A stretch of DNA of 64,000 bases from NCBI GenBank assembly GCA_002269645.1, contig NIVC01001478.1, positions 99,136-163,135 on the forward strand, read 5' to 3'. The notes below the pieces were generated by a model. That model had not been told where the DNA came from. It saw only the letters and a program-made list of their open reading frames with translations, and searched no databases. Positions 26,413-48,814 of this stretch are shown in pieces. Made by a program: the position numbers and the translations under genes. This DNA is from Macrostomum lignano (Eukaryota). Every line of letters begins with the position of its first letter. Positions within the stretch are counted from its first letter, which is position 1.

Positions 26413-26555
26413 TCAGATAAGAATGTCCTTCTTGCCGAACGCGTCATAGTGAAGGGGCGCAACCGAGCTGAGCGCGGCGGCATGCAGCGAGTCATAATTG
26501 GCTCCCGGCAGCATTAGGGAGGCCAAGCTCGACTGGGGGAGCGAGTCCACGTAGC
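26413..26555 (-). CDS. CtBP: CtBP exon 9 (putative terminal exon, GYVDSLPQ...FGKKDILI*)
   Basis: Phase-1 acceptor TTGCTAG|GC. An alternative in-frame acceptor lies 21 nt upstream (exon start 26576). No homology support; phase and codon plausibility only. Confidence 0.6.
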
Positions 26556-47500: not shown

Positions 47501-48814
47501 GTTGGATCCTGTCCTAATTCGGTTGGATCCTGTCCTAATTCGGTTGGATCCTGTCCTAATCCAGCTGGATCCTGTCCTAATTCAGTTGGATCCTGTCCTA
47601 ATCCAGCTGGATCCTGTCCTAATTCAGCTGGATCCTGTCCTAATTCAGTTGGATCCTGTCCTAATTCAGCTGGATCCTGTCCTAATTCAGCTGGATCCTG
47701 TCCTAATCCATTTGGATCCTGTCCTAATTCAGCTGGATCCTGTTCTAATCAAGCTGGATCCTGTTCTAATCAAGCTGGATCCTGTTCTAATTCAGCTGGA
47801 TACTGTCCTAATTCAGCTGGATCCTGTCCTAATTCAGCTGGATCCTGTCCTAATTCAGCTGGATCCTGTCCTAATCCAGTTGGATCCTGTCCTAATTCAG
47901 CTGGATCCTGTTCTAATTCAGCTGGATCCTGTCCTAATTCAGCTGGATCCTGTCCTAATCCATTTGGATCCTGTCCTAATTCAGCTGGATCCTGTCCTAA
48001 TCCATTTGGATCCTGTCCTAATTCAGCTGGATCCTGTTCTAATCAAGCTGGATCCTGTTCTAATCAAGCTGGATCATGTTCTAATTCAGCTGGATCCTGT
48101 CCTAATCCAGTTGGATCCTGTCCTAATCCAGTTGGATCCTGTCCTAATCAAGCTGGATCCTGTCCTAATTCTCTAGGCGCATGTAGAAACGTATGTTTTA
48201 GACAGATTTAAAACGTACAAATGCGATTAATAAAAGTCCGATAAATATTGAAGACATATTCGTTTAACTAAACATTCAAAGACACTTGTAGCATATTTAG
48301 CGTTAAAGTCAAAGTAGAGTTAAAAGTCTACACTGTCAATAAAAAACGAAGCAAAATGAGTTAAACGAATTTGGAGGAAATTTCTTAGATAAAGAGCAAA
48401 TAGGAAATAGCAATAAACAAACTGCTAGACTCATAAGGCATCGATGAGAGGAAATGCAGCGGCGGCGGCGGCTTGCACCACTTACCTGGCCGGGCGGCGA
48501 TCACCGCTTTCCCCTCCTAAAATGGCGCGCGGATTATTGACACAGGACAGAACAAGCGAAAAGTGTTTGAAATGTGCTTTCTGCTTGCCTAGATAAAAAA
48601 AGCTACAGGTGTCACAGGTGGCAGACTGTTGGCCCTCTGAAGAGCTTGGCCTTACCTGGCTCACTATGGTCTGCTCAGTGCGCCCGATGGCCTCCAGCCA
48701 GCGCTCCCGCAGCACCGCCGGCTTCTTCGGCACCCGATAAAAATGCCGATTGTCGTCCGAGCCGCGGTAGCGCGACCGGAACTTGCAGTTGGGGAAGCCA
48801 CAGGTTGTCGGCAT
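26413..48814 (-). CDS. CtBP: THAP-domain C-terminal binding protein (THAP-CtBP), ~670 aa, 9 exons: 48814-48656, 45726-45483, 44854-44526, 43822-43678, 40008-39799, 28666-28439, 28316-28185, 27663-27241, 26555-26413
   Basis: All introns are GT-AG with matching phases (0,1,0,1,1,1,1,1), totalling 2013 nt = 671 codons. CtBP signature segments: [33 protein letters not shown]|[53 protein letters not shown]....LPDSL.FCVN. N-terminal THAP C5/C10/C57/H60. Confidence 0.9.
26630..27225. repeat. Compound array in CtBP intron 8: 19-bp (GGGTCACTCATTGGCTCAT)n switching to 11-bp (GGGTCACTCAT)n
   Basis: Direct reading; the switch is at ~26930. Confidence 0.96.
27241..27663 (-). CDS. CtBP: CtBP exon 8
   Basis: Acceptor CCGCAG|GC; reads [50 protein letters not shown]...; donor TTTG|GTGAGT. 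Confidence 0.88.
28185..28316 (-). CDS. CtBP: CtBP exon 7
   Basis: Acceptor CCGCAG|GC; reads [32 protein letters not shown]...; donor AATG|GTGAGC. Confidence 0.88.
28439..28666 (-). CDS. CtBP: CtBP exon 6
   Basis: Acceptor TTCTCAG|GC; reads [23 protein letters not shown]...SDCVSLHC; donor ACAG|GTGAGT. Confidence 0.92.
28705..29345. repeat. 65/67-bp minisatellite (TTCATTTTGTCTAGGGCCTAGGCGGAGGAGAGGGCGGTTCTGGGTGTTAAACAGATTGAGATGAG)n
   Basis: Direct reading, ~10 copies, in CtBP intron 5. Confidence 0.96.
30265..32120. repeat. 42-bp minisatellite with 39-bp variants (GGCTAGATTAGCAATCCATTCTATTCCTTCATTCATGATGTA)n
   Basis: Direct reading, ~44 copies, in CtBP intron 5. Confidence 0.97.
32810..33860. 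repeat. 18-bp repeat (AGATCCTTCATTTCCCTC)n, with a 136-bp higher-order unit in its left half
   Basis: Marker ATACCCCCATACC occurs at 32838, 32974, 33110, 33246 and 33439. Confidence 0.95.
34500..35340. repeat. Degenerate purine-rich (GAGAGTAGACATGAGATGG)-type repeat, split by a MITE insertion
   Basis: The same motif lies on both sides of 34615-35114. Confidence 0.8.
34615..35114. mobile_element. 500-bp hAT-like MITE with an internal 21-bp array (GCAGGCACTCATTTTGGCGCC)n at ~34722-35090
   Basis: Termini CAGGGACGTCGCCA and the reverse complement CAGGCGCGTCGCCA match at 12/14. A perfect 8-bp TSD AGAGTAGA is on both sides. CAGG termini plus an 8-bp TSD are typical of hAT. Confidence 0.8.
37630..38260. 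repeat. Degenerate ~21-bp repeat (AAAATGATGGGATCAGGGATC)n
   Basis: Direct reading. Confidence 0.92.
39105..39680. repeat. 21-bp repeat (ATGATGGGATGAGGGTTCATC)n, related to the 37630 array
   Basis: Direct reading; consensus units are 17/21 identical. Confidence 0.95.
39799..40008 (-). CDS. CtBP: CtBP exon 5
   Basis: Acceptor TTCCAG|GC; reads [28 protein letters not shown]...[12 protein letters not shown]; donor TTCG|GTAAGG. Only partly seen by the ORF track. Confidence 0.92.
40044..40317. repeat. 9-bp repeat (GAAGGTCCC)n, ~35 nt from the exon 5 acceptor
   Basis: Direct reading. Confidence 0.96.
41350..42392. repeat. 41/42-bp minisatellite (GAGTGAGGAGCGGCCTGGGAGAGTGGCGGGCAGCCCAGGTA[A])n with a ~498-bp internal duplication
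   Basis: Direct reading; identical ORFs at 41414 and 41912, and at 41539 and 42037. Confidence 0.97.
43040..43340. repeat. 33-bp minisatellite (GTGGTGCCGCTCTATCAAGAGAATGACCGGAGG)n, ~9 copies
   Basis: Direct reading. Confidence 0.96.
43678..43822 (-). CDS. CtBP: CtBP exon 4 (not in the ORF track)
   Basis: Acceptor CTTTCAG|GTG; reads [48 protein letters not shown]; donor CTCG|GTGAGT. Confidence 0.92.
44526..44854 (-). CDS. CtBP: CtBP exon 3 (S/T/P-rich linker and start of the substrate-binding domain)
   Basis: Phase-1 acceptor ATGCAG|TT (alternative at 44848); reads ...[39 protein letters not shown]; donor AAG|GTGTGT. Confidence 0.88.
45077..45280. repeat. 54-bp tandem repeat, ~3.7 copies, in CtBP intron 2
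   Basis: Direct reading (18-aa periodicity in the ORF track). Confidence 0.9.
45483..45726 (-). CDS. CtBP: CtBP exon 2 (second half of THAP and basic/coiled linker)
   Basis: Acceptor TTCTCAG|CTC; reads [36 protein letters not shown]...; donor CCGA|GTGAGT (phase 1). Confidence 0.88.
47465..48175. repeat. 21-bp minisatellite (GATCCTGTCCTAATTCAGCTG)n in CtBP intron 1
   Basis: Direct reading, ~33 copies. Confidence 0.97.
48486..48560 (-). promoter_or_regulatory. Candidate alternative non-coding first exon/internal promoter in CtBP intron 1
   Basis: A YY1-type motif CGCCATTTT (48527-48519) is followed by a consensus donor CCAG|GTAAGT (GT at 48485-48484). No ATG between them. Confidence 0.35.
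48656..48814 (-). CDS. CtBP: CtBP exon 1 (first half of THAP)
   Basis: ATG at 48814; reads [53 protein letters not shown]; donor CAG|GTAAGG; 53 codons, phase 0. Confidence 0.9.

Follow-up and report, generated by a model that had tools for sequence, protein, structure and literature searches.

The Macrostomum lignano THAP-CtBP gene: a known and ancient animal fusion whose flatworm copy has a replaced dehydrogenase triad

Introduction

The corepressors CtBP1 and CtBP2 of vertebrates and CtBP of Drosophila carry no DNA-binding domain, are recruited only via partner proteins, and have an intact catalytic triad in their dehydrogenase-like core. C. elegans CTBP-1a carries an N-terminal C2CH THAP domain in front of such a core and, to our knowledge, is the only member of the THAP-CtBP group for which sequence-specific DNA binding and repression are known. 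Nicholas et al. reportedly named THAP-CtBP as a protein group in 2008 and listed nematodes, echinoderms, and cephalochordates among the taxa carrying it. That a corepressor can carry a DNA-binding domain of its own has been known since that year, and annotation pipelines already record the fusion in many invertebrate phyla, including at the locus described below.

In C. elegans, the C5A/C10A substitutions abolished rescue, a THAP-only construct gave partial rescue, and the ctbp-1b isoform is without the THAP domain (bioRxiv 10.1101/2020.06.09.143248). The structure of the C. elegans CtBP-1 THAP domain is available as PDB 2jm3 (bioRxiv 10.1101/2021.02.01.429122). The main text of a 2023 survey of CtBP evolution (PMC9907507) contains no mention of THAP. 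A 2026 preprint on a sea-cucumber genome (Holothuria, PMC13228809) reported a gene combining THAP and a 'lactate dehydrogenase domain' and treated it as absent from the other species analysed there, and a literature search for THAP-CtBP in echinoderms and amphioxus returned nothing direct except this preprint.

Results and Discussion

Gene model of the Macrostomum locus

The window is a 64,000-nt stretch of Macrostomum lignano DNA (GenBank assembly GCA_002269645.1, contig NIVC01001478.1, positions 99,136 to 163,135 of the forward strand). Nine exons on its minus strand, from 48814 to 26413, formed a single frame of 677 codons in which every junction was GT-AG, with a coding sequence of 2,034 nt (677 aa) in the preferred model. 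From its 5' end, this frame encoded a complete C2CH THAP domain and a basic linker, then a CtBP dehydrogenase-like core followed by a divergent tail. The features are listed below together with the two exons in which a public model departs from ours.

48656..48814, minus strand: exon 1, 159 nt, with the ATG start and THAP residues 1-53 (zinc ligands C5 and C10; P29, W39)
45727..48655, minus strand: intron 1, 2,929 nt, phase 0, separating members of the THAP zinc-ligand set
45483..45726, minus strand: exon 2, 244 nt, with THAP residues 54-89 (C57, H60, F61, EGDVPVADP box) and the basic linker
44526..44854, minus strand: exon 3, a Ser/Thr/Pro/Ala-rich linker followed by the first part of the CtBP core (...HEK), with the PXDLS-cleft alanine A231
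43678..43822, minus strand: exon 4, VLNEAV...SLG, including the cleft residue V245
39799..40008, minus strand: exon 5, ending ...GLVGF(G), the final exon in common with public model P0001
38824..38913, minus strand: penultimate exon of public model P0001, inside intron 5 of the present model and without CtBP homology
36602..36733, minus strand: last exon of public model P0001, inside intron 5 of the present model
28439..28666, minus strand: exon 6, with the NAD-binding GFGRVG motif (G361, G363, G366) and D384
28185..28316, minus strand: exon 7, with S447 and C476 at the catalytic Arg and Glu positions
27241..27663, minus strand: exon 8, with G496 at the catalytic His position, the end of the core (FCVNSE), and an Ala/Pro/Ser-rich tail with KRPR
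26413..26576, minus strand: exon 9 (tentative), the final 54 codons and the TGA stop, with no homology support

Exon 1 ended in ...GTGAGCCAG, directly followed by the donor gtaagg, and exon 2 was bordered by the acceptor ...ttctcag and, after its final ...CCCGA, by gtgagt. The exon 1/exon 2 junction was in phase 0 and the exon 2/exon 3 junction in phase 1. The original prediction, which had placed two small exons joining in phase 0 into a complete THAP domain and then splicing in phase 1 into seven CtBP exons, was thereby reproduced in its coordinates, its seven signature residues, and its compatible AG acceptors, GT donors, and phases. Its single open frame also stood, and the 2013-nt length given for it requires an alternative in-frame acceptor of exon 9 at 26555, 21 nt downstream of the preferred one. 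When the exon 9 splice was left out, the frame stopped 8 codons beyond the exon 8 donor. Exon 3 offered a second in-frame acceptor as well, 6 nt apart (44854 or 44848), of which the public model uses 44848.

The UniProt entry A0A1I8IUV3 (Macrostomum lignano) was identical to exons 1-5 at 358 of 362 residues and is already annotated with PF05485 (THAP) and PF00389 (2-Hacid_dh). This 99% match, together with splice acceptors none of which is of the nematode TTTTCAG type, led us to reject the idea that the window is nematode or contaminant DNA and bore out the earlier reading of the genome as that of a flatworm. The public gene model halts after exon 5 and enters the intron; exons 6-9 were recovered here, providing a corrected full-length M. 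lignano gene model. The P0001 segment at 36602..36733 was either mispredicted or represents an alternative, truncated 3' end. The paralogue models P0018 and P0181 aligned collinearly onto exon 6, and a database search with the C-terminal half found no protein matching exons 6-9 exactly, nor any transcript-derived support for exon 9.

Intron 1 holds a 21-nt minisatellite at 47469-48171, and the intron before exon 6, 11.1 kb in length, is packed with minisatellites. The surrounding genome is repeat-rich and highly duplicated.

Domain content and comparison with C. elegans CTBP-1a

The predicted protein scored 36.2 bits against the Pfam THAP model (cutoff 23.9) and matched 2-Hacid_dh_C and 2-Hacid_dh with E values of 2e-32 and 5e-18. 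Residues 1-89 aligned without gaps to PDB 2jm3 (E 9e-49), and the THAP signature was complete (C5, C10, P29, W39, C57, H60, F61). In the printed alignment, the 2jm3 sequence reads identically to residues 1-89 of the C. remanei model P0022, which was identical to the Macrostomum domain at 68 of 89 positions, in agreement with the estimate in the original prediction that about a quarter of the first 89 or so positions differ from C. elegans. Human and rat CtBP1/2 structures matched residues 200-535 with E of about 1e-112, while other 2-hydroxyacid dehydrogenases reached only about 1e-28.

The residues of the NAD(H)-binding GXGXXG motif and its acidic partner (G361, G363, G366, D384) were invariant in alignment A1, as were the PXDLS-cleft residues A231 and V245. 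We take the latter to be A52 and V66 of human CtBP1, by a manual count along CtBP1-L; the surrounding motifs align to human CtBP structures. The basic linker in exon 2 is likely a nuclear localisation signal. No conserved CtBP C-terminal-domain block, neither the central PELNGA.YRY type nor the terminal motif, was found in residues 536-677. Proline- and polyalanine-rich C-terminal tails have been described as flatworm-specific (PMC9907507).

Like C. elegans CTBP-1a, the Macrostomum protein combines an N-terminal C2CH THAP domain (76% identical over 89 ungapped residues) with a CtBP core bearing the NAD-binding motif and the cleft alanine (A203, corresponding to A231 in Macrostomum), followed by a long lineage-specific C-terminal tail, and its gene shares the intron after Q53, which was mapped in the C. 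remanei locus. Unlike the nematode protein, which belongs to another phylum, it has a longer, Ser/Thr/Pro-rich linker between THAP and core and is encoded by a 22-kb gene with minisatellite-filled introns. With vertebrate CtBP1/CtBP2 and Drosophila CtBP it shares the core fold and sequence, the NAD-binding residues, the PXDLS cleft, and a disordered tail; it departs from them in its DNA-binding domain and in its triad.

Distribution and origin of the fusion

Database models with the THAP-CtBP architecture were found in nematodes, Lamellibrachia (annelid), Glandiceps (hemichordate), Anneissia (crinoid), Acanthaster (sea star), Branchiostoma (amphioxus), and this flatworm. Annotated fusions cover at least six phyla and share their exon layout. 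The Lamellibrachia, Glandiceps, Anneissia, Acanthaster, and Branchiostoma models have the same domain order and a basic KR-rich linker, and in four of the five the THAP domain was 75-83% identical to that of Macrostomum; the Branchiostoma value was 63%, for a model with an alternative N-terminus. Among individual groups, identity to the flatworm THAP was 83% for the annelid, 78% for the hemichordate, and 75-76% for nematodes, with deuterostomes and nematodes together spanning 75-78%.

An exon 1 of exactly 159 nt, ending in Q53 and a GT, was present in the window and in Lamellibrachia, C. remanei, Glandiceps, Anneissia, and the trematode Paragonimus. In the same set, apart from Lamellibrachia, exon 2 began with LR[VI]CS, placing a phase-0 intron after Q53; the Lamellibrachia comparison rests on the 159-nt exon 1 and its donor, the start of its exon 2 being mapped inexactly. 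One eukaryotic scaffold (L008) carried THAP exon 1, exon 2, and the first CtBP core exon in identical order, two loci (L006 and L007) had exon 1 alone within reach, and the Paragonimus contig ends about 8.5 kb past the THAP exons. An exon border at or near HEK/VLNEA, at tblastn resolution, was also seen in annelid, hemichordate, crinoid, and nematode loci.

In at least five phyla, the THAP domain is conserved and is interrupted by its intron at the same place. Since THAP identity follows phylogeny and the intron after Q53 is shared, the comparison argues for vertical descent of THAP-CtBP from an early bilaterian gene rather than horizontal transfer, and independent, convergent fusions were rejected on account of the shared intron position. 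The architecture had been proposed as an old and strongly conserved protostome one; its age and conservation held, whereas the restriction to protostomes did not, given the hemichordate, crinoid, sea star, and amphioxus models. The distribution and the shared intron position would imply that a DNA-binding isoform is the ancestral bilaterian state, later lost in vertebrates and insects, and that CtBPs without THAP are derived. In alignment A1, the N-terminus of Drosophila CtBP (MDK...KRSR) aligned to the distal part of the invertebrate THAP exon 2, which suggests that the THAP exons were lost in that gene.

The fusion is therefore real but ordinary: Macrostomum carries its own version of an ancient animal gene that had been described before. 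The novelty once entertained for it did not survive: the fusion is widely annotated across invertebrates, a finding named beforehand as refuting, and the group was named in 2008.

Loss of the catalytic triad

What is new, and only mildly so, is that the flatworm copy keeps none of the three dehydrogenase active-site residues. According to the PDB alignments and alignment A1, the Arg-Glu-His triad (R266, E295, and H315 of human CtBP1) is replaced by S447, C476, and G496, in the contexts NTCSAA, LPNRCA, and TPGSAF. The paralogues P0018 and P0181 also carry NTCS and TPGSAF, that is, their Arg and His are replaced alike. Triad loss is partial in Caenorhabditis, whose CTBP-1 is also without Arg and Glu in alignment A1, and complete in Macrostomum, so that of the two only Caenorhabditis keeps the catalytic His. 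Because Caenorhabditis has lost Arg and Glu as well, the replacement leaves membership in the THAP-CtBP group untouched. The Lamellibrachia, Glandiceps, Anneissia, Acanthaster, and Branchiostoma proteins, unlike that of Macrostomum, keep the triad, canonical C-terminal motifs, and slowly evolving cores (77-90% mutual identity); the Macrostomum core was 50-55% identical to those of other phyla, which were mostly 77-90% identical to one another.

Given that Ser-Cys-Gly stands in place of the triad here, and that a 64%-identical paralogue has likewise replaced Arg and His, dehydrogenase activity is most likely absent from the protein. We consider it possible, somewhat short of probable, that the Macrostomum THAP-CtBPs are natural 'pseudo-dehydrogenase' repressors, in which the THAP domain stayed almost unchanged and the NAD-binding residues and PXDLS cleft were kept, the whole triad was lost before an old duplication, and core evolution ran at about twice the pace seen in other phyla. 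A natural CtBP without the triad in a regenerating, RNAi-tractable flatworm bears on the long-running question of whether catalysis matters for repression, and if Macrostomum is without any triad-intact CtBP, it would be an animal with CtBP function wholly uncoupled from catalysis.

Alternative explanations

Very probably, the locus descends vertically from the ancient bilaterian THAP-CtBP gene and represents it in M. lignano, a species with at least two diverged paralogues. The THAP and CtBP exons would form one gene, a reading in which the exon 2-exon 3 join follows from phase compatibility, orthologous models, and the public gene prediction. The THAP exons might instead be a separate upstream gene or a THAP-only transcript, with CtBP starting in or before exon 3 and the fusion being a prediction artefact. 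This would fit the stand-alone THAP models of about 110-190 aa, of which a THAP-only search returned many in nematodes and one in Paragonimus (those of nematodes may be genuine THAP-only isoforms or the result of split gene models), the read-through of the exon 2 donor, which stays open and ends 42 codons later (ORF 45355-45720), the in-frame Met at residue 164 within exon 3, the THAP-less isoforms present in Glandiceps and sea urchin, and the partial rescue by THAP alone in C. elegans. Nevertheless, the GT/AG sites are canonical and the phases match, the same exon layout recurs across phyla and the same exon order on scaffold L008, the public M. lignano models P0001 and P0018 each join THAP to the CtBP core, and the 75-83% conservation of the THAP domain is consistent with purifying selection on a working protein part. 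Additional isoforms are likely, yet they would not remove the fused form, and we regard a separate THAP gene as improbable.

A decaying duplicate, with the fast core and the lost triad as signs of lost function, is more improbable again. It would agree with the low core identity, the replacement of all three triad counterparts, the lack of a database model for exons 6-9 of this copy, and the duplicated, repeat-rich neighbourhood. Against it, the 677-codon frame is uninterrupted over nine exons and 22 kb with canonical splice sites throughout, the THAP, NAD-binding, and cleft residues are conserved or invariant, and the Caenorhabditis CTBP-1, which is functional, is likewise without Arg and Glu. 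The 64%-identical paralogue has the same Arg and His replacements (NTCS, TPGSAF), and the state has therefore persisted through a long divergence. The remaining idea, also raised in the original prediction, is that the THAP exons came in by horizontal transfer, with a nematode as one conceivable donor, and were joined to a CtBP gene already present in the flatworm. In its favour are the very high similarity to the C. elegans domain and the known association of THAP domains with P-element-like transposases. However, the flatworm THAP is nearer to the annelid and hemichordate domains than to those of nematodes, its diagnostic residues agree with non-nematodes, a second, old Macrostomum paralogue also bears THAP, and the intron after Q53 is common to flatworm, trematode, nematode, hemichordate, and crinoid, with the 159-nt exon 1 and donor shared by the annelid. 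Horizontal transfer is effectively refuted by the shared intron and the pattern of THAP identity, and we give it a negligible chance.

Proposed function

If it works like C. elegans CTBP-1a, the vertically inherited fusion protein would sit directly on specific DNA sites through its THAP finger, enter the nucleus by means of its basic linker, and oligomerise through its NAD(H)-bound Rossmann core. Its cleft could then recruit PXDLS-motif partners and chromatin-modifying complexes, by which transcription would be repressed. If catalysis is gone, the protein would serve solely as a repressor and scaffold that binds DNA. An internal start could plausibly also yield an isoform without THAP, of the kind seen in C. 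elegans, sea urchin, and Glandiceps. Arabidopsis ANGUSTIFOLIA is a CtBP-like protein without the conserved catalytic residues (PMC9907507). It is about 30% identical, non-orthologous, without THAP, and has cytoplasmic roles; it resembles the Macrostomum protein only as a catalytically dead relative.

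Predicted structure of the THAP-CtBP gene

The joined model of the THAP-CtBP gene comprises the nine exons below; exons 3-9 were chosen by a script picking splice sites around CtBP-like open segments.

Exons of the THAP-CtBP gene
48814-48656, minus: exon 1, opens with ATG; donor gtaagg
45726-45483, minus: exon 2, acceptor ttctcag; ends one base into a codon, followed by gtgagt
44854-44526, minus: exon 3, from the script
43822-43678, minus: exon 4, from the script
40008-39799, minus: exon 5, from the script
28666-28439, minus: exon 6, from the script; paralogue models map here
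28316-28185, minus: exon 7, from the script; paralogue models map here
27663-27241, minus: exon 8, from the script; paralogue models map here
26576-26413, minus: exon 9, tentative; open frame and AG acceptor only

In a script run on the window sequence, all boundaries were AG/GT with compatible phases, giving 2,034 nt (677 codons), and the original prediction of seven CtBP exons in one frame behind two THAP exons was thereby reproduced. Its frame length of 2,013 nt is reached through an in-frame acceptor within the last exon, at 26555 (21 nt further downstream), and differs to that extent from the present model. Exon 3 likewise has two in-frame acceptors 6 nt apart (44854 or 44848). The peptide joined from exons 1 and 2 carries C5, C10, P29, W39, C57, H60, and F61, the THAP signature at the predicted positions. 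An AG (cagtgcag/c, window 48815-48840, minus strand) precedes the start ATG at a distance of one base and could be a spliced-leader trans-splice acceptor; such trans-splicing is known in Macrostomum.

The best database match of the assembled protein was A0A1I8IUV3 (358/362 identical, exons 1-5), on which THAP and 2-Hacid_dh domains are already annotated. It comes from M. lignano, a free-living flatworm (Platyhelminthes, Macrostomorpha), which bears out the flatworm origin first suspected from the genome style. Since its tail, without CtBP homology, maps to 38913-38824 and 36733-36602 (minus strand) inside the 11-kb intron 5, this public model stems from the window locus or a near-identical duplicate. 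It is truncated and mis-extended past exon 5, its 3′ end being either a mis-prediction or a truncated isoform without the NAD-binding domain. The homology search found no exact database protein for exons 6-9. Two further M. lignano models, P0018 and P0181, belong to one paralogue whose core is 64% identical to the window protein, and their collinear mapping on exons 1-8, exons 6, 7, and 8 included, supports the latter three as the true continuation of the gene.

Domain composition and distribution

Pfam matched the predicted 677-aa protein to THAP (36.2 bits, cutoff 23.9), 2-Hacid_dh, and 2-Hacid_dh_C. Residues 200-535 matched solved CtBP1/CtBP2 structures (E about 1e-112), while residues 1-89 matched the NMR structure 2jm3 ungapped (E 9e-49), which is the THAP domain of C. 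elegans CtBP-1 (THAP-family preprint, bioRxiv 10.1101/2021.02.01.429122). As printed in the alignment, 2jm3 has the sequence of residues 1-89 of C. remanei P0022, which are identical to the window protein at 68 of 89 positions, in agreement with the difference of about a quarter that the original prediction gave for C. elegans.

The first homology search returned proteins from several groups with precomputed domain hits for this architecture.

Proteins combining THAP and 2-Hacid_dh
Many nematodes: Ascaris, Steinernema, Strongyloides, Caenorhabditis, Bursaphelenchus, Globodera, and others
Annelid: Lamellibrachia satsuma
Hemichordate: Glandiceps talaboti
Crinoid: Anneissia japonica
Sea star: Acanthaster planci
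Branchiostoma

The fusion is thus annotated widely across invertebrates, which by the original prediction's own reckoning removes its novelty. To a known protein group, named in 2008 (Nicholas et al.), the window gene adds a flatworm member that is new or has at least gone undiscussed so far; only the corrected gene model and the triad-less, fast-evolving core are of modest interest.

Several comparison loci showed further features. A eukaryotic metagenome scaffold (L008 3597-8481, GC 44%) bears THAP exons 1 and 2 followed, on the same strand, by the first CtBP core exon. In Paragonimus kellicotti (L005 10001-10721), both THAP exons are present (81% identical, same intron) and annotated as a 195-aa stand-alone protein; this contig is too short to reach any CtBP exon. 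In Lamellibrachia (L001 17507-18252), the start of a CtBP exon lies in about nine copies in tandem, each of ~85 nt, which accounts for a duplicated segment in the annotated protein P0009. This array is either a product of the assembly or a genuine tandem repeat across an exon. An insertion in P0009 at the Q53 intron position stems partly from a called mini-exon (3267-3329) and an upstream acceptor.

Age of the architecture

The original prediction had left two origins open, an old, conserved protostome architecture or a horizontal move of the THAP exons. Over residues 1-89, identity to the window protein was 83% for the annelid, 78% for the hemichordate, 75% for echinoderms, and 75-76% for nematodes, with ambulacrarians mutually 85-88% and the two nematodes 89% identical. 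These values follow the species tree and do not place the flatworm within the nematodes. Exon 1 measured exactly 159 nt and ended with Q53 followed by GT in Lamellibrachia, C. remanei, Glandiceps, Anneissia, and P. kellicotti (L001-L005). Exon 2 began with LR[VI]CS in the last four, the loci in which its start was mapped exactly. As in the window, a phase-0 intron falls between the second and third of the four zinc ligands in every mapped locus. At tblastn resolution, core exon boundaries also fell at or near HEK/VLNEA, LG/IAV, and G[LF]G/R in most of the five loci.

An intron at the same codon in Spiralia, Ecdysozoa, and Deuterostomia argues for common descent and against repeated independent fusions. 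Together with the species-tree-like identities, it also contradicts acquisition of the THAP exons by horizontal transfer, which is effectively refuted. As judged from these sequences, the architecture dates back to the bilaterian ancestor or earlier; age and conservation therefore stand, but the limit to protostomes does not, because the shared intron reaches Deuterostomia.

A conserved MDK...KRPR segment in distal THAP exon 2 is the start of THAP-less isoforms. Glandiceps X2 (P0186) begins with the MDK within exon 2; in sea urchin X2 (P0048), an alternative first exon is spliced to LRICS. In A1, an alignment of eleven CtBP and THAP-CtBP proteins, the N-terminus of Drosophila CtBP (P0080; MDK...KRSR) lines up with distal exon 2, which suggests that THAP-less CtBPs are a derived state. 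Canonical CtBP N-termini may likewise be remnants of an ancestral THAP-bearing exon 2.

Divergence of the core and tail

Core residues 204-535 shared no more than 50-55% identity with any other phylum, whereas non-nematode phyla other than Macrostomum had cores 77-90% identical to one another. The CtBP catalytic triad is Arg-Glu-His (PMC9907507; R266, E295, and H315 in human CtBP1). Alignment with human/rat CtBP structures and A1 placed S447, C476, and G496 at these positions (NTCSAA, LPNRCA, TPGSAF). In the paralogue, Arg and His give way to the same residues (NTCSVS, TPGSAF) and the Glu is absent too; the loss therefore goes back beyond an old duplication and has been retained since. In A1, Caenorhabditis has lost Arg and Glu and kept His, and the triad is complete in Ascaris and all deuterostome and annelid proteins, in contrast to Macrostomum. 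NAD-binding G361, G363, G366, and D384 and PXDLS-cleft A231 and V245 are invariant in all eleven proteins. The tail (residues 536-677) is Ala/Pro/Ser-rich, lacks the canonical CtBP C-terminal blocks, and matches published flatworm CtBP tails (PMC9907507).

A decaying pseudogene, as triad loss might suggest, is unlikely given the intact 677-codon frame over nine canonical exons, the conserved THAP, NAD, and cleft residues, and a triad state common to a diverged paralogue. A separate THAP gene or THAP-only transcript may exist as an additional product of this locus, but is unlikely to be the only one.

Proposed mode of action

The basic linker ERRAKRAK is probably a nuclear localisation signal, by analogy with KVKRQR at the N-terminus of CtBP2. 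Oligomerisation would proceed through the NAD(H)-binding core, whose cleft would recruit partners. With Arg, Glu, and His all missing, catalysis is very unlikely, which would leave the core a scaffold role. The THAP finger would tether the protein directly to DNA, as judged from the homologue in C. elegans: there, rescue of a ctbp-1a mutant phenotype is lost with C5A/C10A, persists with the PXDLS-cleft mutation A203E, and is partial with nothing but the THAP domain (bioRxiv 10.1101/2020.06.09.143248). CtBP catalysis is dispensable in mammalian cell assays and needed for normal activity in flies (PMC9907507). Given this mixed record, a natural triad-less lineage is mildly informative on whether it matters.

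Other features of the window

Two further coding features were found.

12672-16353, possibly from near 10369, plus: multi-exon BTB/BACK-Kelch (KLHL-like) gene; BACK in 12672-13304 (E 3e-10), Kelch repeats in 14407-14835 and 15670-16353 (Kelch_1, E 3e-18 and 3e-43)
18307-19362, minus: complete cytosolic sulfotransferase domain (Sulfotransfer_1, E 4e-66) in a single 352-codon open segment, apparently intronless

Minisatellite arrays, whose units of 7-161 nt occur in up to 86 copies, occupy about 21.7 kb, roughly one third of the 64-kb window (for example 1836-3817, 30269-32121, 41349-42401, 50389-53198, and 55309-57161). They fill most THAP-CtBP introns and yield long spurious ORFs on both strands. 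At 62001-64000, GC falls abruptly to 0.29, compared with about 0.5 elsewhere.
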